Source of the DNA: Scyliorhinus canicula
Lineage: Eukaryota
Direction: 5' to 3'
Assembly: GCF_902713615.1 (NCBI RefSeq)
Contig: NC_052153.1
Span: forward strand, 80,108,608-80,172,607
DNA: 64,000 nucleotides
Shown in pieces: positions 1-51,022 of the stretch. Both the position numbers and the translations under genes were made by a program. Numbering within the stretch: position 1 is the stretch's first letter; each line of letters begins with the position of its first letter. Below the pieces are notes generated by a model that was given only the letters and a program-made list of their open reading frames with translations, did not search any database and was not told the origin of the DNA.

Positions 1-1530
1 CAGCTAGACTTACCAAAACCTGTTCTACCAGGCTCTGATGGCCGCAGCCTCTCCCTCCCCTCCCCCCTCCCCCCCCCCCCCCCCCCCCCCCCCCCCACCT
101 CACTCCCGTTCACTGGCTGGCTTAAACCGGCAAACGTTGAGGTCCCCTTGCCCGGTCCGAGGAAAAACCAAGAAATCCCCTTAGCACATAACCCAGCATA
201 CCCACCCAAGACCCAAAGAACCATTATTGCAAATGAGAGTCCCAACTCCTGCCTGGTCCAAATATACAGCCGTTGACTGATTTAGTACATTCACCAACAC
301 GCAGTGAAGAAATAAAGTTACATGAGGCTACATCGGTACAAGACCCACTCTCAGTCCCAATTCTCAATTCTGCCACAGTCCTTCTGCCTTTGCAAAGCCC
401 TTCCGTCGCTTCCGCTGTCCCAAAATAAAAGTCATTGGGCGAGATTCTCCGCAAATGTGGAGAGTCGTAAAAGCTGCCGTGAAACTGGCCGTGTTTCACG
501 GCAGCCTTCACGCCCGTTCCCGGGGCCCGATTCTCTCCCCCCCCAATCGGGGCTAGGAGCGGGACCCCGGGAATCACGGCGTCGCGGCCTTAACGACCGT
601 CGTTAAAGCTGACGCGCGGCTGGCGTCTGCGCGGGTGACGTCATCATGCCATTGATGAAACCCGCGCATGCGTAGTTCCGCATTTCTCCATTGCCGCCCG
701 ACAAGATGTGGCGGCGTGATCTTGTCGGGCGGCGGGGGGGAAATAGTGCGTCCCTTTTGGACGCAGGCCCGACGATCGGTGGGCACCGATCGCGGGCCTG
801 TCCCCTCCCGAGCACAACGGTGGTGCTCCCGCCCCAAACGGGCATCCAGCGCCCGTTTTTACGACGGCAGCAAGCAGGTGTGTTTGCTGCCGTGGAAAAA
901 CGGGCGTAAAGGCCCGTCCACTCGGCCCATCGGCCGCGGAGAATCGGCGCTCGTCGTAAAAAACGGTGAGCAGCGATTCGTGGCGTGGGTATGGGGGTGG
1001 GAGAATAGCGGGAGGGCGCAAAAAATGTCAGGAGGCCCTCCCGCTCTTCTCTGCTCCTTAGATTTGTAGGTCACCCTGAACTTATTAGCTGGATATACTA
1101 TGCCGCACTACAGCTTGATGTACAGTGCCTTCTTCACCCGGCTGACGGCCGCCCACCTCTTCGCCAGCTCCACCGTAAAGTCGTGGTATATAGGTATACC
1201 AGCTCCAGCCCACTGCACCTCCCGCTTCTGTTTTGCCCAGCACAGGACCTTCTCATTCACGCTGTACCGACGGAAACAAACAGTTACTACTCTTGGCAAC
1301 TCACTCGCCTTTGGTATAGGCCTCCATGACCTATGAGCCCAATCCAGTTCGGATCGAGAGGGATCGTCCCCCTTCCCCAATGGCTCTGCCAACATTGTGG
1401 CAAAATACTCCGTTGGCCTCGGGCCTTTCACTCCTTCGGGCAGACCCACAATCTTCAGATTCTGCCGTCTGGATCTGTTTTTCAGGTCTTCCATTTTGGC
1501 TCACAGACCCTTGTTGGTCTCTATCACCTT
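1..1530 (-). mobile_element. L1-clade LINE fragment (ORF1 RRM/CTD and downstream spacer), split by a MITE at 437-1045
   Basis: EDLKNRSRRQNLKIVGLPEG...ELDWAHRS...IYHDFTVELAK is a typical L1 ORF1p signature; it continues as DFYFGTAEA beyond the MITE. Confidence 0.85.
437..1045. mobile_element. GC/CpG-rich palindromic MITE (PIF/Harbinger-like), right end truncated
   Basis: Terminal GGGCGAGATTCTCC and internal GGAGAAT repeats; interrupts L1 ORF1. Confidence 0.65.
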
Positions 1531-3573
1531 CTACAAAGCCTAAGGGGCAATTTAACATGACCAATTCACCTAACCTGCACATCTTTGGACTGCGGGAGGA
1601 ATATGGAGCATCCAGAGGAAACCCCGCTGACATGAGGAGAATGTGCAAACTTAACATAGTTCTGAGGTTGGAACCGGAATTGGGTCCCTGGCGCAGTGAG
1701 GCAGCAGTGTGGCAATTGTGCCACTGTGATTTTGCAATCAACCCGTATTTTCCCAAGTGACAATTAATTTTTTCACCTGAATTATTCTTTCTAGAACTTT
1801 CCCCTGCACTAAAGATTAAAAAAAATAAATTTAGAGTATCCAATTCATTTTTCCAATTAAGGGGCAATTTAGCCTACCCTGCACGTCTTTTGGGTTGTGG
1901 GGGCAAAACCCACGCAAACACGGGGAGAATGTGCAAACTCCACACGGACAGTGACCCGGAGCTAGGATTGTCCCGAGTCCTCGGCATCATGAGGTAGCAG
2001 TGCTAACCACTGTGCCACCATGCCGCCCCAAAGTCTCCCATTATAACTACTCTGTACTTCTTACACTTCTCCGTAATTTCCTTTCAAGGATCTTTGAGCA
2101 CTATAAATTCTGGATCTTGGGTCTGCTTTCATAACCACGTGCAAACTGTGGAACTAAGTGTAGCCTCATATGACCAGTTAGTTTCAAAACCAATAATAAT
2201 AACAATCGCTAATTCTCACAAGTAGGCTTCAATGAAGTTACTGTGAAAAGCCCCAGTCGCCTGTTCGGGGAGGCTGGTACGGGAATTGAACCCGAGCTGC
2301 TGGCCTTGTTCTGCATGGCAATCCAGCTGTTTAGCCCACTGTGCTATTGGAAATCTATAGTTTTTTTTGCAAAAAAAAGCAACTTATGATTTTATACCAA
2401 ATATCTCAATTTTTAAGTATTTCTCTCTTGTGAAATAGTGAAGATGATATGTCTTTTAGAACCTAAATAAGAATTGTGAAGTACTTGTCCATGAAGACAT
2501 AATTCCAAAGAGAAGAATCATTTGTTAAGGTATGATTCTAATACAGCACTATATTTTGTATTGTTTCTCACCTCTCATGAAAGCAATCACTCCATGCCAA
2601 GTTACTTGCGAATATGGACGGCACAGCGACATAGTGGTTAGCACTGTTGCCTCACAATACCAAGGACTGGAGTTCAATTTCAGCCTTGGGTGACTCTATG
2701 TGGAGTTTGTATGTTCTCCCCGTGTGTGCGTGGGCTTCCTCTGGATGCTCTGGTTTCCTCCCACAGTCCAAAGATGTGCAGGTTAGGTGGATTGGCCATA
2801 CTAAATTGCCTCAGTGTCCAAAATGTTCAGCGGGGTTATTGAGTTACAAGGATAGGGTGGAGGCGTGGGTCTAGCGAAGCTCTTTCAGAGGGTTGATGCT
2901 GACTAAATGGGCCAAATGGCCTCCTTCTGCACTATAGTGATTCTATTGCTTGGCCTAAATACATGTGAGCTATGACTGTGAGGGCAGATAGGTTATCTTT
3001 TGTGGGGAGCATTGTAGCAAATCCCAATCTTATGGTGTTTGATCGCCAAATACATTTCTCCTCCTTAATTCAGTTACCACACCAATATTTTCTTTTATAT
3101 GATTAAAAATAATAGGGCAGCACTGTGGCGCAGTGGTTTGCACTGCTACTTCACAGCACCGAGGATCCGGGTTTGATCCTGGCCCCGGGTCAGTGTCCAT
3201 GTGGAGTTTACACATTCTCCCCATTTCTGCGTGGGTCTCACCCCCACAACCCAAGATGATGTGCAGGGTAGGTGGATTGGAAACCCTTAATTTAAAAAAA
3301 AAGAATTGGATACTCTAAATTTATATTTGAAAAATGGTTACAAATAATAACCTTAAAACTCTGCATCAGTGTAACGCATGAACTGTAAATCATGCTCCCA
3401 TGGCACTATTCAAAGAGGAGCTCTCCCCAGGTCTGGACAATATTCATCCCTCAACCAACAGCACTAAAACAGATTATCTGGTCATTCATAGCTTCTCTAT
3501 TTTGCGGAACCTTTGTTCCCACATTGGCCAACAATGTCGATACTATATTAAGGGTAAGTGCTTTCGTTGAAAG

Positions 3574-4799
3574 TGTTACAACACCCTGAGCGAGTCCGCG
3601 GACAATTCCAGGCACTCGGGCACCGGAGTCCCAACATAAGTGAATTAACCAATAATTTGTATTAAGGTTTTGAGATCTTTAGCCCTCCACTGCTCCAATG
3701 ATTTACAGGAGTAAATCACAAAAAAACTGTTTTCCAAGAACAGAAGAGATAAACATGTAATGGCGCTGATAGAACGGTCTGCTAATCTAATTATTCCCCT
3801 CCTTCACCGTCCCACCCTCTACCCACACACATGACAGACACAGTGTGGGGTAGGGAAGGATTAAAATAATTGGGGGGGGGGGGGGGTTATATGGGAATGA
3901 GAGGTGAGCATCGTTGCTGCTGAGATTGTCGTCTTTGCAGTCAGCTATCTTCTAGGGACGCAAAGTATTGAAACCACAAACTGGCTTGGACCTTCCAGCT
4001 TGAATCTTCAGGCCGGACTCTCAGGCTATGGAATCCCCTCTAGGGTGACACTTTAACTTGTGTTGACATGAGCCTGACCATGGAAGATGCACTGTAGGTC
4101 CATTCAGTTCCTTATCTGTTGTCAGCTTTAGCAGATTGGCCAATAGATTGTCTCAGTTAAACAGAGCATCAGAGCAGCAACTTCCACGAGCCTGAGAGTG
4201 GTCTGGTAAATTACAGGGAGTCAAATCCGGATAGATTCCCCCCAGCTTGGTCTCCATGCTTTGCTCACTAGCTGGATAGAGAGAAAGCACTGGCTGCTCT
4301 GTTTGCCTGGAGTGAGCTCCAGCTGCGATATCAGAGAAATCCACCCTTTTCTGGGATTGAACCTGGGACCTTGGTGCCGTGAGGCTAACCACTGCACCAC
4401 CATGCTGCTCTCCTGGGAGAGATATTTAACAGAGTTCTGCTCAGCTGGGTTCAGATCAAACAGAAACCCAAACAGACAGAGTCACACAGCAAGGTGCCTT
4501 CCGGAAAAATCCGGACCGATCCACATCGAGAATCTGTCAAGTGCCGGGAAATTAAAGTAGCCAATTGGCTGCCAGCCATGTCCGTCACAATATATCATCA
4601 CTGGACCAAACTAAGTAGCACAACTGGCTGGGGGGGGGGGGGGGGGGGGGGGGGTGTCCTTGGACCAGACCAAGTATCACATTAAACTGTTGAAAAGCAA
4701 AGGCTGACGTATTGCAGAAACCAGTATAATAAAAAATAAAGGACTTAGACAGGGAAAACAAGGTTTAAACATGGGAATACTTACAATAGAAATGTCACA
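3574..4799 (-). mobile_element. Probable solo LTR
   Basis: TGTTACA...TGTCACA termini; 4-bp flanks aaag/caag (one mismatch). Confidence 0.55.
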
Positions 4800-4910
4800 C
4801 AAGTAACTTGTACATCTTGCCAAGGCGTCCTTTGCTGATAAGGAAATAAATATGGAGATGTGGCTGCTGTTATTTTTTTTGGAGGGTTTCCTATCAAGGA
4901 TCCAACATGT

Positions 4911-5889
4911 CCAGCCAGATCTATTCCTGGGGAGGAGGGCGGATGCCCTTGCCTTTGCCTCCCTGATCGCCTGCCGTAGAATCCTCTTTGGCTGGCGGTC
5001 AGCAGCACCACCCAAAGCTGCAGACTGGCTGTCCGACCTCTCGGAATCTCTCCAAATGGAGAAAATCAAATTCGCCATCCGGGGGTCAGACGATGGCTCC
5101 CACAAAGAGCCATTCACGCGACTGTTCCGGGACTTGTTTGTGGCCAACGAACAAGAGGAAGAATAGCCTAGGTAGTCAAGAATCAGGGGAAAGGAGTCAA
5201 GGCATGAAAGGGAGAGATAATCTGGGAGGGAGGAGGGGGGGGGGGGACACACACGGCTAAACCTGAGGAAAGAAAGGTGAACCACGGGGGGGGGGGGGGG
5301 GGGGGGGGGAGACAGCAAACCTGAGGAAAGAAAGGTGAACCGTGGAGAGGGGGAGAACAAGAGAGGACAACCAGCGAGGTGGGGGGGGGGGGGCATGGAA
5401 ATGGGAGCCGGAAGGAAGGCACGGGATACCAAAATGAGTATGACATCTCCAGGAGCGGGGAACAAGGAAAATAAAGACGGCGGACGGGAGGAGCAGCAGA
5501 AGCGGAGGCGAGCGCGAGACGGCAGCGAGATCCATCCGGGAGAAGCAGGCGACAACAACACGAAACACAGCCAAGTATCGCACACTATAATTATCTCCAC
5601 AGCACCCAAATGTATATTTGCCTCCCCAATCTCTCCCCCCCCCCCCCCCAAACAGTCGCCTACTTACGTGGTGTAAATAATTTTGCCAGGTGTACAGAGC
5701 TGCCGAGCTGGTGCACAATACCCCACCAGTTATTCTATTGCATTTTTTATTGTATATTTTTTTAACTATGTACCATTTTCTTCTCCTTGGTATGTATATA
5801 TATATATATATATATATGTTTCTTATCCTGTGTACATAACGGTAATTATACCTTGTTCAAAAACCCAATAAAAAACATTTATTGAAAAA
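4911..5889 (+). mobile_element. 5'-truncated L1-clade LINE (ORF2 C-terminus, G-rich 3'UTR, AATAAA, A tail)
   Basis: ADALAFASLIACRRILFGWRS...LQMEKIKF. TSD AAGGATC(C/T)AACATGT at 4896-4910 and 5890-5904. Confidence 0.9.
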
Positions 5890-7034
5890 AAGGATCTAAC
5901 ATGTAAGGGTTCAAACAGCTGCTTCTATAGCTCCTGCCTCCAACTGGTGGAATTGCTTTTGTGAAAAGGAGACTGGTGGCAATTCACTCATTTATTGACC
6001 ATCCAGCTCACAAGGATGTCCTGGTACATGTTGTGTGCCTTTTGAAGGCATATGTCTGCACTTGGCCGACCAATAGGATATTTTATTTATATACTTACCA
6101 TAAAATAAACATTAAAGGATGCTCAGATATATGGAAAAATGGGCATTGAACAAGTAAAAACTTTAAACAAATAATGCACCTTTCACAACCAATTCAGTAC
6201 TTATGAAACAGTCACTGTTGTAATGTAGAAAACCAACAATAAATTGAGCTAAAAAAGGTGCCACAAACAGGAATGAGAGACTGACCAGATCATTTGTGAT
6301 ATTGGTTGAACCCAAAGCAGAGATTTTATCCCTATATTTCTCTGCATCACAAAGCCTGCCCACTTCCACAATTCCCACTCCATCATTACCTCAGGCCATA
6401 TATTGTTGCATCCTTTCTATATTCCCCTTTAGCTTCTGGACTCAATTACTCCAATGTTATCCTGACCACATCCTCCATGTCTGTAAAATGTCAGCTTATC
6501 CAAAACTCTGCTGTTCTTTACCTATCAAGCATTGTCCTTTATCCTCGCATTTAAATTTTTCATCTTTTGTTTAAATTCCTAATGGTCTATTTCATCGCTA
6601 TCTAGCGTCACGTTTGTCCTCCTACAACCCTTGCTTACACTTGTTTTAATTGTAACTTTACTTCCTTTGCCCAATTAGAACTGTTATCAGCTGCCTAAAA
6701 CTCAATCCTTTTAGGAATTACCTCCTAAACCCCTCCACAATTTCTTAAATTTAAAAAAAATTGAAGGAAGTAGGTTTTAGAGTATGCAATTCATTTTTTC
6801 CAATGAAGGGGCAATTTAGCGTGGCCAATCCACCTACCCTGCACATCTTTTGGGTTACGGGGGTGAAACCCATGCAAATAAGGGGAGAAAGTGCAAACTC
6901 CACACGGCCAGTGACCCGGAGCCCGGATCGAACCTGGGACCTCGGTGCCGTGAGGCAGCCGTGCTAACCAGTGCACCACCATGCTTCCGTTTCCTTCAAT
7001 TTGTTTTGTGCACCCGATCCTTATTTGCTCGTCA

Positions 7035-7400
7035 GTCTTGGCTCAGCAGTAACACACATACATATCTTTGGATCGGAAGGCTGGTTCAAGCCCATTTCGA
7101 GACACTCACGACGCCATTAAAGCGGACATGTTAATGTCATACTGAGGGAGTGCTGCACTGCAGAAGAGTTGAATTAGGTGTTAAACTGAGGCCCCGATTG
7201 CCCACAGGTGGAAGTAAATGCTCCCATGGCACTGTTCGAAGAGGGGCACTCCCCAAAATCTGGACAATGCTCATCCCTCAACCAACAGTACTAAAACAGA
7301 TTTATCTGGTCATTCACATCTGTGTTCTTTTGCGGGACCTTAGTTGCCATATTTGCCTTCAATATCTATACTTCATTAGCTGCAGGTGCTTTGGTATATG
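7035..7400 (+). mobile_element. DeuSINE (SacSINE1/AmnSINE1-like), old; other copies ~3390-3530, 6165-6330, 19250-19380, 38870-39300, 62770-63115, 63445-64000
   Basis: tRNA-like head followed by Deu-domain-like gttaaactgaggcccc...cccatggcactgttcgaagag...catccctcaaccaaca. Confidence 0.7.
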
Positions 7401-7409
7401 AAAGATATT

Positions 7410-7535
7410 GGGCGGGAATCTCTGGCCGGGTTTGCCTGGCGACCGGAGAACCCCGCCCGAGGTCAATGGATTTTTCCATTGGCGGCGTCTCGCCCATGGC
7501 GTTCTTGCGGTGCACGGGGTGGAAGAATCCTGCCT
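7410..7535. mobile_element. Short Harbinger-like MITE
   Basis: TIRs gggcgggaatct / agaatcctgcct; 3-bp TSD ATT. Confidence 0.65.
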
Positions 7536-9079
7536 ATTACAGAACAACCTGCATTTCTCTAGCATCTTTAACATTGTAAGATGCACTCTTAAACAAAATT
7601 TGACACCAAACGACGCAAAATATTAGAATGGGCATGGTAGATTTTAGTGTGTTCTGTGAAGGGGTGAGCTGGATCCCCTATATTCAACCCCCTTAAGTTT
7701 TAAAAAAAATTTAGGGTATGCAATTCATTTTTCCCAATTAAGAGGCAATTTAGCATGGCCAATCCACCTACCCTGCACATCTTTGGGTTGTGGGGGTGAA
7801 ACCCACGCAGACACGGGGAGAATGTGAAAACTCCACACGGACAGTGACCCAGAGCCGGGATCGAACCTGGGACCTCAGCGCCGTGAGGCAGCTGTGCTAC
7901 CCACTAGGCCACTGTGCTGCCCCTCAACTCCCTTAGTTGGTCACAACAAAGATTTATCTTTCTTCTTCATGAGGATATACCTTTTTCAAATGAGAATGTA
8001 TTTAACTATTTATACTGAGAGCAATAAGGAGCCAATCAAAAAAGGTTTTCTGGAGTCAAAGTACGAGCAAATGTATTAACGACTAAATCCCAAAATAAAT
8101 AAAAACTTAACGCCAAGCATTTGGCCCTCATGTAAGCATTCCGAGTACCACACACGCAGGCACCCTTTTAGTTATTGGTGGCTGTGCACTTGCCAACTCT
8201 ATTAGCCTGCAAGAGTGCCATGAAATCAGGACTTGCGCCCAGCCTTCTGAACAGCATTGTGGGTGGTCTTACACCACCTGGACTACAGTGGCAGCTCACA
8301 ACCACTTTCTCTGGGGCAATTAGGGATGGGTAATAATTGCTGGCCTTCCAAGTAATGCTCATGTCTCATAAACCAATAAAAGAAAAAGTGTAACTTTGTG
8401 CTCCTTTTCCTCCTCCAATTAAATTTCATTCAACAATAATAAATATAACCTTGGTAATGGAATTACTCAACATTGAGCACCAGTTTGTTACATTGCCATA
8501 CTTATAGCCTATTTAATTTGCTACTGTACCAGATATATTAGCTGTGACGTCTATCTCAACAGGGAGTCCTGTTTGCCAGCCTTACAAAATGGTTCATCCT
8601 GAAATTATGTGAACTGTTCTTGTGGTTTCTTACTCAGCACATCAGAGTTATAGTTTATAATATTTTGTGATGCTTCCCAAAATGGGATAAACTGCTCACA
8701 CTCCCCATTTGAGCCCACAAGCGAAGAGTGACCACCTGGGTAACATACTGGAATATTACAGATGTCGGAAAAGACAAATACTGTCTTAAGGACAAAAATG
8801 ACAGAAAATCTAATACTTTTAAGGTAAATGTACATGTCGCCACAGTCCCAGGTGACCATCAGCTGCTTTCCCCTTACAGAGCGAGAGCTGACTAGTGGTG
8901 TTTTAACCTGAGGGTCACCAGACCTCAGGCAAAGGGCATGATGGCATAGTGGTAGCACTGCTGTCTCACAGCGCCAGAGACCTAGGTTCAATTCTGGCCT
9001 TGTGTGGCTGTGTGAAGTTTGCACTTTTACCCATGTCTGTGTGGGTTTCCTGACAATTATGTTTTTGAATGCTCATCAA

Positions 9080-9590
9080 TGGCCTCTCATCTTCCACCCT
9101 TCATAAACTTATCGAACACTCTGCTACTTGTATTTGAACTTGCACCAAATCCCCTTCACCTCTATAATGCTCCCTGCTCTGCACTGGCTCCAGTGACAAT
9201 GTCTGAAGTTTTCTGTTCCAAAACCGGTTTTCAAATCCCTCTCTGTAAATTCCTCCTCCAGCCTTACAATCCTCTAAGATCTCCACACTCTTCAATTCTG
9301 GCCTGTAGTGCATCTCCTACTTTTATCGTTCCATCGTTGGCGGCCATGCTTTCAGATGTGAAGGCCCCAAACCCTAGAATTCCCTAAATCTCTCAGCGCC
9401 GCCCCCCCCCCCCCCCTCCTCGTTTAAGTCACTCCCAAAGCTTCACCATTTTCACCTAGCTTTTGGTCATCTGTCTCAATACCTTGTTATGTAACTCAGT
9501 GTCAAACAAATCTTTTGTTTGACAATGGTGCTGTGAAGTACCTTGGGATTTTTTTCTATTGTGTTACAGGGGCTAAGTAGTTGCAATTAT
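9080..9590 (+). mobile_element. L2-like LINE 3' fragment (related pieces at ~6330-6740, 22730-22885, 42400-43310)
   Basis: Pyrimidine-rich decayed ORF end and L2-type tail ctgtgaagtaccttggga...; LIQNSA remnant at ~6497. Confidence 0.55.
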
Positions 9591-10135
9591 CATCAATATG
9601 GGCACAGGGAATAATCCTTGCACTGGATCAGGTAGGCCGAAGGCACATCGGACATTGGGCTTTGAGCCTCATTCACCTGAAACCTCAGGTCTGCAGATGT
9701 CTGCTGGGAGTGTCCAGGCAGCTAACTGCCAAAGTGGATTTAAATTTTGTGCCACTGCAACACCAGCAGTGGCCGGGTCCAGGAGATGGGGGAAGGAAAA
9801 TAGGGGCGTGATTGGAATGGAAGGAAGGAATACAGCCCACTTTTACATAGCCAGCTTCAAACAGTTGCTGGATCTGGGGTCTGACAGCTATTTTAGGAGC
9901 AAGCCATAGACTCCTTATTATAATGTATCTGGCAGTGGATCTCTGGCACAAAATGAGCAAATGTTTCCACCCCGCCATACTGGAGGCTTAGGCACTAATG
10001 TTGTGCCTGAAAAATAGGTGCAGTGCGACTGAATTTCTAGCTTTTTGGTATCCTAAAGCATAAAAACCAATAGATAACTTTCAAAATGCAAAATTAATTG
10101 GGTTTTTAAAAGCTTAACATTTCATAAGTAAATTG

Positions 10136-10141
10136 TTTATT
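10136..10141 (-). terminator. Candidate distal polyadenylation signal AATAAA
   Basis: TTTATT on the + strand ~950 nt after the stop; TE-like sequence resumes below ~10040. Confidence 0.55.
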
Positions 10142-10292
10142 AAAAATACTGCATTATGTAATACTACACTAAAAAGCTAGTAAGTATGCAACTGTGTAAA
10201 GATGCAACGTTAAAATTACATGCTTCCCAAAACAGCAAAGATCAAAAATAGAAGAAATTCCCACCATTAAGTTTCACTTAGTACATCACTAT

Positions 10293-10298
10293 TTTATT
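10293..10298 (-). terminator. Candidate proximal polyadenylation signal AATAAA
   Basis: TTTATT on the + strand ~800 nt after the stop. Confidence 0.45.
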
Positions 10299-11095
10299 GT
10301 CAATGCACATGAAACTACCACATAACGTTGTTCCCTTTTAAAGTGTGGATAAACCACATCAATACGAATAGAAGTTGACCAAAATTGAAAAATCTATACA
10401 AAAAGGTACAAATGTCTTGTATGGTAAATGATATGCATGCTTCTCAGAAGAGAAGAGAAATGGGGAGGTAGAAGATTCCTATGTAAAGGTTTTAACAAAT
10501 ATTGGTCTACTTACAACAGGAAACCCTTTCCTGAAAAAGGCACTAGCATTTGGTTGTTGACATTACATATCAAATTTAATATTGTCAATAGCAAACAAAC
10601 ATTCGCCTTTTCCCCACCATTATAGAAAATAAAAAGAGTATATGGGTGAGATGATGAAAAACTTGTTATAAAAATTCACATTCTTGCAGACAGTTTCTTC
10701 TGAACTTACTTCCATAAATGACATCACAAAGAGATGAGGATATTCCTTACAAATTGGATCATTTGCACATGGCAGCTTTGTAAAGTGTATCTGCATGAGT
10801 GACAAATCCGTTTCAATTCAAATATCACAACTGTTTTTTTTGTTAAAAACTTACTGCCTCTTAGGAAAGCAGTAGACAACCCATTGGAACAGTGAGTACC
10901 AAGTAACTGTGGTCTATCATATGGAAGTAAAAATGTTAAGTGTGTAACAGTAAATTTACTATTGTCTCCTTGTCGAAGGAAGCAGGTTACACAATTATCT
11001 TGAGCACTATCTGTACACGATGAATGCATTTTGCAAAGTCAGGATTCAGTTAAAATTGCACCTCCCTCACCAGCTTTTCGGTACTTATTTTGTTT

Positions 11096-12334
11096 TTATC
11101 TTGAAACTACTGAGCTGATTGAATTATAAGACGTTCCCCCATTGCAACTAGATATGTAAGTTTCATGCCCATTAGTATCTAAATTAACTTTGAAAACGGC
11201 TGAGGCCTTTAAAAGAAAGTCTGCAGCATCCCGACGACCCAGTCCTCTTAGTTTTGACATCAAAAGACCCACAGAGTTCTCTGGTGAAGCTGCCCACTCA
11301 GCCAATACAGCACCAGTTGGACTTGTCAAAAGTTTGCCTTCTTTTAAAGTTCCGTTCTGAACATTGAGTTTTGCAACAAGATCATCAAGTCCTAAGTTTG
11401 TAGCCAAAAGGCACCAGTCTTTACCCATGGGATCTGGTGGGTCCAGTAAGCGGCTAAGTTTCCTTCTTGCAAGAAGATTCAGTTCAGATACAGGAATATC
11501 CATACCTAGGTTTCCTTGCGAATAGATATCAAGGCAACCAAAGCATAGAATGCTACTAAAACTCTCTTTATAGCCCCCTATGGTATTGGTGAGTGAAGTC
11601 TCTTTCTGAGCTTGAGCTCTGAAGAAGTCTCTAGGCTGATAAACCATAACAAGTTCACTATGCTCCCTAAGCTGCTGGGGGCTCAAGTAATGCTTGACGG
11701 TCAGGATTCCTGGCAAAGTAGATGCCATTAGATTATCAATGACGCTACAAATGGAATCCAGAAACATAAAACATCTTATTTTTTCGGTTTCTGATCCTCT
11801 CACTTGTACTTCCACACCCTGTCCATGGTTGACCAGCAACACCAAGACTTCAGTTCCTTTGTTGGATATTTTTGATCCATTGGTCCATAACCTTACATCC
11901 AGTTCACCTTCGGAGTTCTGCTGATGTATCCATCTACAGAGGTTCACCTGCACTTTGTGGAAAGTACCACAAGGGTATGGGGTATGGTGCTCAACAGGCA
12001 CAAAGCGGACCCCTCCATAAACCATCATTTCATCATCTTCATCAGTCCAGGATCGGTGTAGACCATCTACTTTAATTAGAGCAGGAATATCTACCATGGA
12101 TCCATTTGTTAAATCCCGAGCACAGATGTCCATTGCCTCTAGAATCTGCAACAGCTCCTCCACATCCTTCTCGGATACCAGCCGCAGGATATCATCTATT
12201 GTGTACCGGCCCCTGTAGTGGTGCAAAGCCTTTTGATTTTCATTGGACAAAAGTTTTCCCAGTACATTGGTGCATAGCCACCGAGGATCCAGAAGTACCA
12301 CATCTTGGATAGTTTCACTTTGTAAAATATTGAT
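11096..12334 (-). CDS. DAPK1: DAPK1 last coding exon (COR, death domain, Ser-rich tail), 1239 bp including stop
   Basis: Acceptor ctttgtctcatag, then INILQSETIQDVVLLDPRWLCTNVLGKLL...RRKLSRLLDPPDPMGKDWCLLA...GRRDAADFLLKAS...GTSYNSISSVVSR*, the DAPK1 C-terminus. Frame is continuous with the upstream exons. Confidence 0.99.
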   Translation of the reverse strand: MNILQSETIQDVVLLDPRWLCTNVLGKLLSNENQKALHHYRGRYTIDDILRLVSEKDVEELLQILEAMDICARDLTNGSMVDIPALIKVDGLHRSWTDEDDEMMVYGGVRFVPVEHHTPYPCGTFHKVQVNLCRWIHQQNSEGELDVRLWTNGSKISNKGTEVLVLLVNHGQGVEVQVRGSETEKIRCFMFLDSICSVIDNLMASTLPGILTVKHYLSPQQLREHSELVMVYQPRDFFRAQAQKETSLTNTIGGYKESFSSILCFGCLDIYSQGNLGMDIPVSELNLLARRKLSRLLDPPDPMGKDWCLLATNLGLDDLVAKLNVQNGTLKEGKLLTSPTGAVLAEWAASPENSVGLLMSKLRGLGRRDAADFLLKASAVFKVNLDTNGHETYISSCNGGTSYNSISSVVSR

Positions 12335-12754
12335 CTATGAGACAAAGAAGATGGAGTGGAGATTAGTGGATTTGAAATGATTAATCTTAGCTTCAGTAAT
12401 AAATCATCTTAATTTAGGCCTGACTTATTTTCAGTCCAAACTTGTTACCAAAGAGCAAGAGTGTTTCTCAACCAACTCAATCCACTGGAGAAGTGTACAA
12501 TGTAAAATGCATTAAGAAAAGGCAGTTTTATTTACGTCACTATTAACAATACACATAATTATCAACTTAGATAACGTGACACCGATTATACTTCAAAAGG
12601 AATTAATTGGATCCAAAGAACTTTGGGTTACCCCGATGATGCAAAAGACATTTTCTGAATGCAAAGTATTTCTTCACATTTTCTAAATTTTCGCTCTTTA
12701 TTACCTGCACTTAAACATTGTTTAATTAGCTTTCCCGAGAGAGTCATAAATCCA

Positions 12755-13406
12755 AGCAGAAATGTATAGCCAATTTCCGCACACATCAGTACAGCCTCAA
12801 CCGGGACCTTTGATTCATTAAAAAAAAATATTTAGAGTACCCAATTCATTTTTTCCAATTAATGGGCAATTTAGCGTGGCCAACCACCTACCCTGCACAT
12901 CTTTGGGTTGTGGGGGCGAAGTCCACGCAAACACAATGTGCAAATTCCACACGGACAGTGACCGAAAGCCAGGATCGAACCTGGAACCTCGGTGCCGTGA
13001 GGCTGCAGGGCTAGCCCACTGCGCCACCGTGCTGCCCCGGGACCTTGGATTCATGTCACATTACATTCAACCCCACCATCTGGCCTGGACTTGCGAAATC
13101 CTATTAGTTGGCCTGGCTTGAGATAATTCACATCTCTTTAACCTGTGATGATCCCTCTCTCCAGTTGCTCCATCTGGACCTGTAAAGACTTAGTTACCTG
13201 CAAAGACTCGTATTCAAAGGATCGTCTTGCATCTTTGACTTTGTCTATATATCTGTTTCTGGAACCCACCTCTTCATTCACCTGAGGAAGGAGCTGTGCT
13301 CCGAAAGCTAGTGATTCAAAACAAACCTGTGCTCACCCCAGTCTAACGCTAGCAATCTGTTTTATGCAGCAAAGTTTATTAAGCAAAGAGGCATCTCCAC
13401 ATCATG
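12755..13406 (+). mobile_element. 3' fragment of a second Penelope-like family (GIY-YIG C-terminus plus terminal repeat with hammerhead), split by a V-SINE
   Basis: Reads QKCIANFRTHQYSLNRDL/GFMSHY across the SINE, resembling the Penelope C-terminal motif GLNRDLGFMSHY. Hammerhead at 13278. Confidence 0.75.
13278..13314 (+). ncRNA. Minimal type I hammerhead ribozyme motif (Penelope-associated)
   Basis: TCAC-CTGAGGA-A-GGAGC-tgt-GCTCC-GAA-AGCT-A-GTGA: stem I, CUGANGA core, stem II, GAA, palindromic stem III, CUA cleavage triplet. Confidence 0.8.
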
Positions 13407-13604
13407 CCTTCATTGACAAAGATCTGGATTTACATTTAAACGCAAGAACTCGTGCACAAGATCTAAGATTTCATAACTTGCAGATTAATATCTGAGACTC
13501 ATTGGATGGAGGGAGTCAACAAAATCTGGCCTGCTCTATACCCATTGCATACACACAATAATGCAGTAGGAAAGCACTGGTGAAACAAGGGGCTTCACAG
13601 AGTG

Positions 13605-13607
<3 letters not shown>

Positions 13608-13636
<29 letters not shown>
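13608..13636. repeat. (GT)n microsatellite
   Basis: About 14 perfect GT units. Confidence 0.95.
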
Positions 13637-13640
<4 letters not shown>

Positions 13641-13896
13641 CCCCACAAGGATTATAATGAGGATAGCTTCATAATATACTCAATACAAAATGTTCAGCAT
13701 TGCAGTTGCTAAACACCTATTTAACGTTTAACTTCCATAATATTGGGTAATTGTTTAAAAGAGAAAGTGGGCCAGTTTGGCAATTATAAGAATAATTTGT
13801 AATTTAATGCCTGGTTCTTGACTTTGTGCATTAATGTAAACTGAGTGATACTGAGCTAGCAGTCTGTTTTATACAGCAAAGTTTATAAAGCAAAGA

Positions 13897-39507: not shown

Positions 39508-41427
39508 CTATCAAGAAAATAAATCACTGTCAGAATAAACATAAAGCAGATTGATCATTAATTTTATGTTCATTTCAAGTCCATCCCATTCGTAATTTGA
39601 TTGTCATGAATAGTATTGATCCCACACAGATGAGCTATCCACTACGACCACATTGTAAGACTCTTATCAGAGATTATAAGGATGGCACAGTGGCACAATG
39701 GTTAGCATTGCTGCCTCACAGTGTTAGGGACCCGGGTTCGATTCCAACCTCGAGTCACTCTGTGTGGAGTTTGTACATTCTCTCTGTGTTTACGAGGGGT
39801 TTCCTCTGGTGTTCTGGTTTCCTTCCACAGTCCAAAAATGTGTTGGTTAGGTGGGGTTACGGGGATGGGGGGGGGGGGGGGGGGGGGGGGGGCGCTAGGT
39901 AGAGTGCCCTTTCGGAGGGTTGGTGCAGACTCAACGGACTGAATGGCCTCCTTCTGTACTGTAGGGATTCTACAAAGTAAGTTTAAATTCCAGTGATAGT
40001 ATTTCCAAGTTCAGGTGAAAAGTTCAAGGTTTATTATAACTGTAAAAATCGGCATATAGAAATTAAGCGTTCAAGAGGTTTGCATGTTGTCATAATAAAA
40101 CATTGTAACCTTTAAAAAGGCTTGCCAGAGCTCAAGAGGAAAAAACAGTTAAAAATTTTCAATCCCCGTAAAAACCAGTAATACTGACACCATGAATACT
40201 GGAGTTTTAAAATTTAAGATCTACAAGGTCACCGAGACAAGTTTTACTGTAACCTTACATTTCCAAGTTTGCCAAGAGCAGCATTAAACTCCTTTTAGTT
40301 TTCATTATTTTCACAGCTAAGAAACATGTAGAAATTCCCATTTGAGGAATACGTGGGCATTTAAAACCAGTGATATTTAAAGAGAAATGCATCATTTTAT
40401 TAAACATGAACTGTCTGGACTTGCCTTACAGTCACCTCTGCATAGACTTTGCAGAAAACAAAAGCATGAGTTTGTAGAACCAATATTAAATCCACCTTGT
40501 TGCAATTTAGTTTTGTTAACTGGAAATTTATATATTATTAATTTGAAGAACAAACTACCGTAGGTATTTATAACTGATTAGCAATATTACCAAAATATTT
40601 ACAATGTATAGCAGAAACTGTTCCACAAAGTTTCAGTGATTCAGTTATCTTTCTTATTAACTTATTCTATTTAAATTTCAAGGATTCATGCAATTTGGAA
40701 ATGACAGTTGCAGTGCTTTCAACTCATTGGTGAATAAATCCCAAAACCAAGGCACACTCAAAATAATGGTATAGATTTACATATGGCTCACTAAGGCATA
40801 AAGCTTTGACTCTGTATGTCATGTAGAATAATTTATTGTAATGGTTTTATAGTGCCATCTGCTGGGGATAGTGGTATGGTATGGAATCTCTATGTTGGAA
40901 CACAGATGTAACCAAACTATGTAAATCCAGTTTACGTCTTGGCTGTATAGGTAATTAGAAAGAATATTTCTCCCTAACACTAATTTTTCCTCCTAAAAGT
41001 GTCCACATGAATGCTCACCCTCTCTGCTGTTTTGCTTGTCCCACACAATCCAGAACTTCCTGCAATTTTAAGACATCCATCTTGTCAAATACTACGCACT
41101 CTCTGTATGGCGATAGACCTTAAACTGACTGCAGCATGTGCCTCATTCACTATTTGTGATCAACTTTCTACCTCTGCAAAATTATCTACCTGTACCGTCT
41201 TTTATCTCACTGTTGCTGATCATCGGTCTATTTTTATTTATTCATGGGATGTGGATATTGCAAGCGAGGGTCAGCCTTAAAACTTAATTGACTTTGAAAA
41301 GGTGGTGCTGAGCTCCCTTCTTGAATTGCTGCAGCCCACGTGGTGTAGCTACTCGTAGTGCTATTCAGTAGGGAGCCCCAGGATTTTGACTGAACAATAA
41401 TGAACTAGTGACATATTTCCAAATCAG

Positions 41428-41855
41428 ATTGCTTCTCGGCCTTTTGGCTAAGGTGAGCATGAGGTGGGCAGCACAGTGGATAGCACCACTGCCTCATAGC
41501 GCCAAGGTCCCAAGTTCGATCCCGGCTCTAGGTCACTGTCCTTGTGGAGTTTGCACATTCTCCCCGTGTTTGCGTGGGTTTCGCCCCCACAACCCAAAGA
41601 TGTGCAGGGTAGGTGGATTGGCCACGGCAAATTGCCCCTTAATTGGAAACTCTAAAATTTAAAAAAATATATAAATAAATAAAAAAACGATGAGCATGAG
41701 GTCAGGTGTAATGCTGTGGGGACCATGAATCAGATTCAATTTAAATTTGAATTTGAATTGTTTTTTGGAGCAGGCAAGGGGTTTGACCCTGTCCACACTC
41801 TGAGCTGTGGCTTTGTAACTCTGATAAAGTAATAATCAAAAAAAAATATATATAT
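41428..41855 (+). mobile_element. U2 snRNA-headed, A-tailed retroposon (SINEU-like), interrupted by a V-SINE at 41466-41690
   Basis: Head ATTGCTTCTCGGCCTTTTGGCTAAG matches U2 nt 1-25 at 24/25. Unique ~125-bp body, A9/(TA)n tail. Perfect 15-bp TSD ATATTTCCAAATCAG at 41413-41427 and 41856-41870. Confidence 0.85.
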
Positions 41856-44060
41856 ATATTTCCAAATCAGAAATGTATGTGACTTGGAGGGGAACTCCGG
41901 GATGGGGGTATTCTTATACACCTGCTACCCTTGCCCTTCTGAGACAGTACAGTTTGTAGGTTTGGAAGATGTTGGCGAAGGAGCCTTGGCAAGTAGGCAC
42001 AGTGTATCTTGTTGATGCCACACAATGCTTTTGTTCAACTCACTGTTTAAATAAACACATAACTAAAAAACCGAGTTAAATAATAAAAGCTGTATAAAAG
42101 TAGATCAAACTTGCAGTGGGTATTCAATTATATCTGTGCCGTCAGTTGCCGGCAGAGGGTAGCAACAAGAGGCACTGAGACTCTATCGGAGATGTTCATT
42201 GCCCGTCACTTGAATATAAGACAGTTAACAGTCCCGTGCCTGAATATTGGCGAGGTCGTGTTTCATACAGGCATGGACTGCCTGATTAATCAAAGGAATT
42301 GAAAATCCAACCAAACATTGCGCAATCATCAGCAAGCATCCCTATTTCTGCCCTTATGATGGGTGGGGATGGGGCACAGCCATTACCTCCAAGTTTGACC
42401 TCTCCAAAACACGCAATCCCAAGAACCACCCAAAGTTAACTTCACTCAAAGATATATCACTCACAACATGTACTGTAGTTTTATTCACTTATCATCTTAG
42501 TCAAAACCACCTTCACCGCTGCTGATCTCCAAATCTTTTTTTTAAATAAATTTAGATTATCCAATTATTTTTTCCAATTAAGGGGCAATTTAGCGTGGCC
42601 AATCCACCTAGTCTGCACATTTTTTTTGGGTTGTGGGGGCGAAACCCACGCAGACACGGGGAGAATGTGCAAACTCCACACGGACAGTGACCCAGAGCTG
42701 GGATCGAACCTGGGACCTCAGCGCTGTGAGGCGGTTGTGCTAACCACTAGGCCCCGTGCTGCCCTCTGATCTCCAAATCTAATGAAATCAGAATTCTTGT
42801 CCTCATTCACAAATCTATGCATGGAGATTTTTATTCTTTGCAATCTCCTTATCCTTTGCAACCTCCTTCAACGGTGTCATTTTGTCTTCTGCTACAGGTC
42901 TCCTGTGGATCTCATCGACTTATTAGCATTAGAACTTTAAGCCATCAAATAGTATTCTCTCCAACTCTCGCCCTAAACTCTGTTTCACTTTGCTCCCTTT
43001 CGAAATTGCTTATCGTCACAAGTAGGCTTCAAATGAAGTTACTGTGAAAAGATCCTAGTCACCACATTCCGGCACCTGTTCGGGGAGGTTGGTACGGGAA
43101 TCGAACCGTGCTGCTGGCCAGCCTGGGTCTGCTTTAAAAGCCAGTGATTTAGTCCTGTGTGCTAAAGCAGCCCCACATTTAACAGTCTCTTCAAAACCTA
43201 TCATCCCAACTATGGCTTTGTTTCCATTTGGTGCTTGCACCTTCCCTGTGGAGTGGGTAGAAATATTTACTACATTAAAAGATGTTATATAAATGTAAGT
43301 TGTGGCAGTTTATCCCTTGTAGAGATTCTGTTCAGTTGTACACCAGTAACCAGTACAAGGGGTTATTTATTCATTAAAAAAAAATTCAATGTACTCAATT
43401 ACTTTTTCCCAATTAATGGGCAATTTAACGTGGTCAATCCACTTACCCTGCACATCTTTGGGTTGTGGGGGTGAGACCCACACAAACGCGGGGAGAATGT
43501 GCAAACTCCACACGTACAGTGATCCGGGCTGAGTTTGAATCCGGGTTCTTGGCACTATGAGGCAGCAGTGCTAACCACTGTGCCACGTGACGCCCCAAAG
43601 GGTTATTATTCACATCATGGTCAACACACCACACATGGGGAGGTAAGTATTACAGTCAATGCCAATTCCTGGCCTATTTAATATCTATGTATACACATTG
43701 CCAACCAAGCTCACAGGTTGGTGATTTAGAATATAAAGCATCAGCTTTTGGAATATAAAGCTTTGCCTCACCTATTGCCTCAACATGTAACATATCAATG
43801 CCACCATTTAATGTATCAAAGAGGTTCACAGTAGTTGGTGACACAAGGAAGGGAGAAGATTCCAATGTAGCTGAATGGTATTAAGGGAGAGGAATAAATT
43901 TGATTGGCCAAATAACGCGGTTATGATTAATTGTTCAAGTGAGAATTCTTCATGCGAGGCCGGAAAAGTGAACATCAGATATATTATTATTTCGTTATTG
44001 GGCCCATTCCCTTCCTTGGCAAGATAAAAGCAAAATAAGACAGATGCTTGCAATCTGGAA

Positions 44061-47567: not shown

Positions 47568-48699
47568 ATTATCTTTGGACTGTGGGAGGAAACCGGAGCA
47601 CCTGGCGGAAACCCACGCACACACGGGGAGAACGTGCAGACGCCGCACAGTGACCCAAGCCGGGAATCGAACCTGGAGCCCTGAAGTAATTGTGCTAACC
47701 ACTATGCTACCGTGCTGCCCACACGGTATACAATATACATATATAATATACACATATACACACACACAATGGATCCCTCCAATTAGTGCCAGATTCAATT
47801 GAACATTGGGGAAATCCACACCACAGAGATTACTAGATCTTTGTGACCAGTTTGCTTTAACGCAAGGGTGAGTGTTGTCACATCATACAAACTGCAAAGT
47901 CTATGCCAATAGGGGTTTAGGTACTTAACTCTGCAGAATTCTACAATAACAATTTGTTCTTTTAATTTCTTATCCAATCCTATGTTCTACCTTAGAATTT
48001 CATAGCCCTTAGTTTATTTAGATTTCCAGTGTTTTGTCACAAAATAAGAACGCAAGAAATAGGAGTTTTTAATTCATGGGGCGTGCATGTTGCATTTAAT
48101 GTCCATCCCTGCTTGCCCTTCATAAGGTGGTGTGGAGCTGCCTTCTTGAACCACTGCTGTACGTACACCCACGGTGCTATTAGGGAGGGAGTTCCAGGAT
48201 TTTGACCCAGTGATAGCGAAGGAACATCAACATTGTTCGAAGCCAAGATTGTGTGGGGTTTGGAAGGGAAATTCCTGGTGGTGATGTTCCCATGTGTCTG
48301 CTACCTTTATCCTTCTAGATGGACGTGGTCATGGATTTGGAATGTGCTGTTTAAGGAGCCTTGGGGAGTTCCTGCTGGTACACACGGTGTGTCAGTGGCG
48401 GAGGCAGTGAACGATTGTGGATGGGGTGCCAATCAAGCGGGCTGCTTTATCCTGGATGGTGTGAAGCTTCTTGAATGTTGTTGGAGCTGCACTCACACAG
48501 GCAAGTGGAGAGTATTCCATTACACTCCTGACTTGTGCCTTGTAGATGGCGGAAGGCTTTGGGGAGTCAGGAGCCGAGTTATTCACTGCAGAATTACTAG
48601 CCTCTGACCTGCTCTTCTAGCCGGAGTATTTATATGGTACCAAAAAGAAAATGCTGGAAAATCTCAGCAGGTCTGGCAGCATCTGTAGGGAGAGAAAAG

Positions 48700-49544: not shown

Positions 49545-51022
49545 AGATATAGAGAAATACAGCACAGAACAGGCCCTTCGGCCCACGATGTTGCGCCGAA
49601 CTTTTGTCCTAGGTTAATCATAGAATTTTGGACAATTTTTCATGGCCAATCCACCCAACCTGCACATCTTTGGACTGTGGGAGGAAACCGGAGTACCCGG
49701 AGGAAACCCACGCAGTCACGGGGAGGATGTGCAGACTCCACACAGACAGTGACCCAAGTCGAAATCGAACTTGGGACCCTGGAGCTGTGAAGCAATTGTG
49801 CTATCCACAATGCTACCGTGCTGCCCTTAAGAAGTTAACCTACACTCCCTTATTCTACCCTAATCCAAGTACCTATCCAATAGCCGCTTGAAGGTCCATA
49901 AATTTTCCGACTCAACTACTACCACAGGCAGTGCATTCCATGCCCCCACTACTCTCTGGGTAAAGAACCTACCTCTGACATCCCCTCTATATCTTCCACC
50001 ATTTATCTTAAATTTATGTCCCCTTGTAATGGTGTGTTCCACCCGGGGAAAAAGTCTCTGACTGTCTACTCTATCTATTCCCCTGATCATCTTATAAACC
50101 TCTATCAAGTCGCCCCTCATCCTTCTCCGTTCTAATGAGAAAAGGCCTAGCACCCTCAACCTTTCCTCGTATGACCTACTCTCCATTCCAGGCAACATCC
50201 TGGTAAATCTCCTTTGCACCTTTTCCAAAGCTTCCACATCCTTCCTAAAATGAGGTGACCAGAACTGCACACAGTACTCCAAATGTGGCCTGACCAAGGT
50301 TTTGTACAGCTGCATCATCACCTCACGGCTCTTAAATTCAATCCCTCTGCTAATGAACGCTAGCACACCATAGGCCTTCTTCACAGCTCTATCCACTTGA
50401 GTGGCAACTTTCAAAGAACTATGAACATAGACCCCAAGATCTCTCTGCTCCTCCACATTGCCAAGAACCCTACCATTAACCCTGTATTCCGCATTCAGAT
50501 TTGTCCTTCCAAAATGGACAACCTCACACTTGTCAGGGTTAAACTCCATCTGCCACTTCTCAGCCCAGCTCTGCGTTCTATCTATGTCTCTTTGAAGCCG
50601 ACAACAGCCCTCCTCACTATCCACAACTCCACCAATCTTCGTATCATCTGCAAATTTACTGACCCACCCTTCAACTCCCTCATCCAAGTCGTTAATGAAA
50701 ATTACAAACAGCAGAGGACCCAGAACTGATCCCTGCGGTACGCCACTGATAACTGGGCTCCAGGCTGAATATTTGCCATCCACCACAACTCTCTGTCTTC
50801 TATCGGTTAGCCAGTTTGTTATCCAACTGGCCAAATTTCCCACTATCCCATGCCTCCTTACTTTCTGCATAAGCCTACCATGGGGAACCTTATCAAATGC
50901 CTTACTAAAATCCATGTACACTACATTCACTGCTTTACCTTCATCCACATGCTTGGTCACCTCCTCAAAGAATTCAATAAGACTTGTAAGGCAAGACCTA
51001 CCCCTCACAAATCCGTGCTGAC
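49545..51022 (-). mobile_element. Young 5'-truncated HER1-like CR1 LINE with intact 382-aa RT C-terminal ORF and a V-SINE in its 3'UTR
   Basis: ORF 49860-51008 is uninterrupted (DFSKAFDKVP, GVPQGSVLGP, KFADDTK, RPHLEYCVQFW). Confidence 0.96.

Follow-up and report, generated by a model that had tools for sequence, protein, structure and literature searches.

The insertion and its boundaries

The 64,000-nt stretch of the Scyliorhinus canicula genome analysed here (hereafter the window; RefSeq assembly GCF_902713615.1, contig NC_052153.1, positions 80,108,608 to 80,172,607 of the forward strand) carries, at window positions 41428-41855, an insertion that begins with U2 small nuclear RNA (snRNA) sequence, ends in an A-containing tail and is bracketed by a target-site duplication (TSD). 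The structure of this element, its relation to U2 and the repeat family to which it appears to belong are the subject of this report. Its host is an old interspersed repeat (41250-41412 and 41871-42020), of which a diverged paralogue lies at 48113-48364. The paralogue contains the target site in a single copy and aligns without gaps over the reconstructed empty site; therefore the boundaries of the element are those of a real insertion. The parts of the element, and of a second insertion nested within it, are listed in Table 1.

Table 1. Parts of the U2-derived element and of the nested insertion, in window coordinates (SINE, short interspersed element)
Feature	Position	Strand	Description
Left TSD of U2-derived element	41413-41427	+	ATATTTCCAAATCAG; 15/15 match to 41856-41870
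Head	41428-41453	+	U2 nt 1-26 (5' end and stem-loop I); aligned to positions 1-26 of the Rfam U2 model
12-nt segment	41454-41465	+	Without U2 counterpart; part of the element; became the target site of the nested SINE
Nested tRNA-type SINE	41466-41690	+	A-rich tail; labelled V-SINE in the preliminary description
Right TSD of nested SINE	41691-41702	+	Second copy of 41454-41465
Degenerate U2 segment	41703-41714	+	U2 nt 28-40, branch-point recognition region; single-copy depth; read directly from sequence
Body	41715-41831	+	High-copy, U2-derived; based on placed contigs and on U2 alignment against shuffles
Body, linker	41737-41760		AT-rich linker and hairpin
Body, Sm site	41760-41774		Sm site and start of stem-loop III
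Body, stem-loop III remnant	after 41778		About 11 nt short relative to the family
Body, 3' part	41791-41796		GTCCAC, then diverged 3' part
3' end and tail	41832-41855	+	ATAATC, then A9 (41838-41846), then (TA)n; read directly from sequence
Right TSD of U2-derived element	41856-41870	+	Second copy of ATATTTCCAAATCAG

The head directly abuts the left TSD, such that position 41428 corresponds exactly to U2 nt 1. It is identical to human U2 at 25 of 26 positions, the sole difference being a change of C3 to T at a CpG; taken alone, it scores 16.8 bits (E=3) with the Rfam U2 model, far under the gathering score. The 12-nt segment that follows is possibly a partial duplication of the U2 nt 23-38-like segment downstream of it, as judged by eye. 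This segment now forms the TSD of the nested SINE (TGAGCATGAGGT), whose two copies are identical at all 12 positions. No intact tRNA was called by ARAGORN in the nested SINE, and more than 40 related copies of its family, at 69-90% identity, account for a very high SINE density in the window.

When the nested SINE is excised, the element measures 191 nt, made up of 173 nt, A9 and (TA)n, and the 173 nt without the tail are close to the length of U2. The element ends in ATAATC-A9 where U2 has the 3' arm of stem-loop IV, and two hexamers, GATAAA (41823-41828) and AATAAT, closely precede the tail. An snRNA-derived 5' region that begins at U2 nt 1 directly after the TSD is thus found together with a 3' poly(A) tail and a 15-bp TSD, as in the crocodilian SINEU elements. 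Much of this architecture had been proposed in a preliminary description of the locus made without database searches, and that part of it holds: the start at U2 nt 1 with one CpG change is recovered in the Rfam U2 alignment, the outer TSD is perfect, a later SINE with its own TSD lies within the element, the predicted size of ~190 bp is correct, the A9/(TA)n tail is present (41838-41855), and direct reading confirms that the branch-point recognition sequence GTAGTA is altered to GTAATG in the degenerate U2 segment.

Descent of the body from U2 and extent of the family

Downstream of the head, the preliminary description had assigned ~125 nt to a non-U2 body. We find instead that the Sm site, a homologue of stem-loop III and the motif GTCCAC are all present, in the order in which they occur in U2. 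The 13 nt at 41762-41774 (TTTTTGGAGCAGG) are identical to the human U2 Sm site and the start of stem-loop III; this stretch occupies element positions 109-121, a few nucleotides downstream of its place in U2, and this shift fits the presence of the 12-nt extra segment. The human U2 reference for these comparisons was a segment taken from a preprint and corrected at GGAGCAGGGAG using a published U2 primer. Local alignment of the body with the Sm-site/stem-loop III segment of human U2 gives a score of 35, compared with 15.8 +/- 2.7 for shuffled sequences (0 of 2000 shuffles reached 35). A fragment of the family sequence, pieced together by hand from the consensuses of contig loose ends, scores 57 against U2, compared with 13.4 +/- 2.6 for shuffles; ~40 of its 46 aligned bases are identical, and its indels consist of one 4-nt insertion and one 1-nt deletion. 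The family consensus is therefore nearer to U2 than is the element itself.

On this alignment, the element is collinear with U2 along its length: nt 1-26, the 12 extra nucleotides, a degenerate nt 28-40, an AT-rich linker, the Sm site, stem-loop III and a strongly diverged 3' part. The region of stem-loop IIa has apparently been lost, and the AT-rich linker is expanded. A 10-bp hairpin that had been pointed out at 41737-41760 does exist, and carries little weight because it lies within a tandem AATTTG tract; it consists of AT pairs only, with one G-U pair, and is probably a product of growth of the linker ahead of the U2 Sm site, not a structure kept by selection.

The abundance of the body was assessed with Logan contigs from three DNA-type runs and one RNA run, placed at a threshold of >=80% identity on positions 41688-42020 (333 nt), with the tail (41832-41855) left out as simple repeat. 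The numbers of contigs placed in the four runs were 810 (run X4), 398, 148 and 62, counts that include contigs on a repeated part of the flank (41952-41999), where the host repeat alone reaches a summed word depth of ~5,000 in X4. Over 41712-41831, summed word depth is 4,000-33,000 in X4, 1,700-13,700 in X8, 1,270-7,200 in X1 and 840-2,100 in X12; over most of the right flank (41868-41951), it is 4-85, and in unique flanking sequence 3-60. Since summed depth does not equal copy number, we put the body family only at hundreds to thousands of copies. The identity of the X4 contigs to the placed stretch is at least 99% for 33, 95-99% for 156, 90-95% for 317 and below 90% for 304; with 189 of the 810 at 95% or more, the family is therefore not ancient debris.

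The contigs on 41712-41831 share derived states relative to U2, unlike independent retrocopies of an snRNA. Given that both TSDs are perfect, the divergence of the element from U2 predates its insertion and belongs to the source RNA. Some differences are private to this copy: position 41786 is A in the element and C in almost all other contigs (57, 45, 31 and 10 in the four runs), and after 41778 other copies have ~11 nt more (GAGCTGGATTA or GAGATGGATTA), which restores the loop sequence of U2 stem-loop III, GAGATGGAATAGG. The derived states common to many contigs support the earlier view that the element is not a simple U2 pseudogene. The U2-SINE reading of the preliminary description was to be abandoned if the fusion of head and body proved single-copy; for the body this condition fails, as it is multi-copy in all four runs, while the head lies outside the stretch on which contigs were placed.

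Searches beyond the placed contigs returned little. BLASTN of the reconstructed element against the 64-kb window found no second copy, as expected at a density of roughly one copy per Mb, and an Rfam scan of the whole window at the gathering threshold found no U2 gene. Among JGI metagenome contigs, an exact scan found none that matched a 25-nt family consensus. An antisense open reading frame (ORF) runs through the element, and a search of a protein collection with it, aimed at gene calls on other copies, gave no candidate. A 31-mer search with the body listed only runs from the source organism, and is uninformative on other species.

Two ORFs of the window deserve mention in their own right. 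A 401-aa ORF at 11096-12301 on the reverse strand matches the Death domain (E=1.6e-13), with a weak match to COR-B, and resembles the final exon of a DAPK1-like gene; in that case, the U2-derived element is probably intronic and in antisense orientation. The only reverse transcriptase ORF in the window, at 49860-51008 on the reverse strand (RVT_1, E=1.7e-24), belongs to a long interspersed element (LINE); its similarity to solved reverse transcriptases is weak and non-specific, with no particular affinity to L1.

Origin of the element and competing explanations

We interpret the sequence at 41428-41855 as one copy of an abundant, non-autonomous retroposon family descended from a complete U2 snRNA, and we put the probability of this interpretation at roughly three in four. 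As an snRNA-derived, SINE-like family, it is supported for the body and probable for the head. Of the U2-SINE family suggested in the preliminary description, the multi-copy retroposon family is supported; the notion of a U2 head joined to a foreign body, made by a Keno or Utopia element or by a parasitised U2 locus, is not.

Several observations weigh against our interpretation. The Rfam U2 model gives no match to the body alone at E<=10, which shows how diverged the element copy is. Upstream of 41715, the element reads GTAATGC where the loose-end consensus of the family reads TCTCTCT, and the summed word depth of the contigs, which is not a copy number, is 3-5 (single-copy) at 41688-41711 and in the thousands from 41712 on. 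The ~50 nt proximal to the head may thus be specific to a subfamily or secondarily added. No other copy with head and body joined was seen in the placed contigs, whose placement began at 41688, downstream of the head. No transcript, promoter or partner LINE was identified for the element, and the body occurs in RNA contigs of 260-998 nt in which the element is internal, a picture suggestive of passive inclusion in longer transcripts.

With respect to the 5' region, the element either derives from a subfamily whose stem-loop II region differs or has been deleted, or had its first ~50 nt added secondarily, as described for SINEU-1 and SINEU-2 (PMC4494074). Two joining contigs, one in X1 and one in X4, link 41711/41714 to 41783/41799, in X4 with CTGCA between; they may represent other loci that have the same 5'-proximal segment and a shorter body, or artefacts of the assembly graph.

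In its strictest form, secondary addition would be confined to this copy: in a single retroposition, template switching or recombination would have supplied a 5'-truncated family RNA with a fresh U2 nt 1 to ~40 and a small duplication, and the near-perfect head would be atypical of the family. The head is indeed 96% identical to U2 and the body only ~65-80%, the element departs from the family consensus upstream of 41715 with single-copy depth at 41700-41711, and SINEU-1 and SINEU-2 are documented to have gained U1 or U2 sequence at their 5' ends repeatedly (PMC4494074). A template switch onto U2, however, should copy from the 3' end of the snRNA or bring a longer part of it, whereas nt 1 to ~40 sit in the correct collinear register with the U2-derived body; moreover, one X4 and one X1 contig appear to share the segment 41697-41714 with the element. 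We consider such a one-off event unlikely.

The mosaic pattern of conservation, in which the 5' end, stem-loop I and the Sm site are kept and the rest has drifted, would also be seen if the copies were retropseudogenes of a functional variant of U2, that is, by-products of the abundance of an expressed small nuclear ribonucleoprotein (snRNP) RNA with an altered branch-point-binding sequence, and not a SINE lineage. The element has the length of U2, and its fold energy is modestly better than that of shuffled sequences (z = -2.1). Against this, the element has an A/T-rich end and an A-tail in place of the 3' arm of stem-loop IV; the copy number, at hundreds to thousands, is far above that usual for snRNA pseudogenes; and the wide range of identities (304 of 810 X4 contigs below 90%) is that expected for a propagating lineage. 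We found no evidence for expression of a small RNA, and regard this explanation as quite improbable.

The preliminary description had favoured a Keno/Utopia-type origin, in which a LINE inserted in a U2 gene is co-transcribed from the U2 promoter to leave a U2 5' stub joined to the remainder of the LINE; collinearity with U2 is indeed disturbed at nt 26/27 and after ~nt 40, near the region that these elements reportedly target, but U2 resumes past the break, with the Sm site, stem-loop III and GTCCAC in their proper order, there is no LINE similarity, and body and tail have no match elsewhere in the 64-kb window, so that with the body being U2 we reject this very improbable reading.

Three further candidates do not fit. 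An ordinary processed U2 pseudogene does not account for perfect TSDs around a strongly diverged body with a head of 25/26 identity, nor for divergence that is common to other copies. A template-switch chimera of snRNA with the 3' part of a 5'-truncated LINE, SINE or mRNA is contradicted by a 3' part that is U2-derived and collinear with the head, and by the lack of LINE similarity in the window. A classical SINE transcribed by RNA polymerase III (Pol III) is at odds with the U2 head, since U2 has an external promoter for RNA polymerase II (Pol II), and with the T6 inside the element.

If the element belongs, as we prefer, to a family descended from complete U2, its propagation can be pictured as follows. 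In the family RNA, the 5' end and stem-loop I of U2 would be nearly intact, and the Sm site and a recognisable stem-loop III would be retained; the branch-point and stem-loop II regions would be remodelled, and a short, A-tailed A/T-rich end would stand in for the 3' arm of stem-loop IV and the 3' box region. U2 genes are transcribed by Pol II from upstream promoters with proximal and distal sequence elements (PSE/DSE). Because U2 lacks an internal promoter and T-runs inside the element (T6 at 41761-41766 and, in the head, T4 at 41441-41444) would stop Pol III, transcription would start externally and be carried out by Pol II, at a single master locus or a small number of them. The argument that Pol III would terminate at internal T-runs was likewise made for SINEU by Kojima (PMC4494074). 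GATAAA and AATAAT, both weak hexamers, would mark the approximate place where the 3' end of the RNA forms and receives the A-tail, and a LINE reverse transcriptase would copy the RNA by target-primed reverse transcription, which at this locus would have duplicated 15 bp of the old interspersed host repeat. From this duplication, together with the A-tail, we infer mobilisation by L1 or Tx1. The bottom-strand nick site deduced from the insertion is AAATAT/GTCA, which differs from the canonical L1 site TTTT/AA; the ATAT at its 3' end could base-pair with the terminal (UA)n of the RNA tail. This copy would later have lost ~11 nt in the loop of stem-loop III and then been hit by the tRNA-type SINE, with formation of the 12-bp TSD.

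A more speculative extension, which we think rather unlikely to be correct, is that the master loci still behave as snRNA genes. Selection there would maintain the 5' end, stem-loop I and the Sm site, and would route the RNA via snRNP export and Sm assembly to the cytoplasm, where its A-tail would be captured by a LINE ribonucleoprotein. The family would then be a SINE dependent on snRNP biogenesis, and its source possibly an expressed, re-programmed U2-like RNA with an altered branch-point-binding sequence.

Relation to known snRNA-derived elements

The snRNA-derived SINEs published so far all come from crocodilians, and SINEU elements were not found in any other group (PMC4494074). Our literature search found no paper on SINEU or U2-derived SINEs in cartilaginous fishes, nor on such a family outside crocodilians, although the family may already stand in Dfam or Repbase. 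The closest design described is that of crocodilian SINEU-3, a U2 sequence that has lost an internal part and ends in ~40 bp of non-U2 sequence, present in ~1,600 copies (Kojima 2015, PMC4494074); in design, the shark element resembles a derivative of the whole snRNA, not a SINE made of a head and a LINE tail. Both are short, poly(A)-tailed and flanked by TSDs, and consist essentially of U2 that is rearranged internally and finishes in non-U2 sequence. Both lack an internal promoter and contain T-runs that argue against Pol III, and SINEU-3 is likewise a high-copy family, with more than 1,000 copies. They occur in different host lineages and presumably arose independently. The shark element keeps the Sm site and stem-loop III and has apparently lost the stem-loop IIa region, and this one copy and its flanks give no evidence of a Mariner-type target preference or of a Tx1-Mar partner.

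With SINEU-1 and SINEU-2, the shark element shares an A-tail, a 5' end that derives from an snRNA and begins at its nt 1 or close to it, and a head that may have been extended secondarily or partly duplicated; their U1 or U2 heads, however, sit on an unrelated or composite body, whereas the shark body is U2-derived and collinear with the head. Mammalian U2 retropseudogenes, polyadenylated or tailless, and template-switch chimeras of snRNA with L1 or Alu (Van Arsdell 1981, Buzdin 2002 and Garcia-Perez 2007, as summarised in PMC4494074) likewise reflect LINE-mediated retroposition of a Pol II snRNA with TSDs. As summarised there, these are independent copies of functional snRNAs, whereas hundreds of contigs have derived substitutions and indels in common with the shark copy, which therefore descends from a diverged master. 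Keno and Utopia, non-LTR (long terminal repeat) retrotransposons that target U2 genes, resemble the element solely in that U2 sequence is involved: it contains no LINE sequence and lies in an interspersed repeat, not in a U2 gene.

The locus probably represents a U2-derived, SINE-like family in a shark, of a kind so far published only from crocodilians. For genome annotation, this means that U2 genes or pseudogenes can be annotated in error where such copies lie. For the biology of snRNA-derived SINEs, it bears on a question left open in PMC4494074, namely what sustains the transcription of an element that lacks an internal promoter. A second and apparently independent U2-derived family would make that question tractable, and the shark family is suited to it, being abundant and having many contigs that are 95-99% identical to the element.

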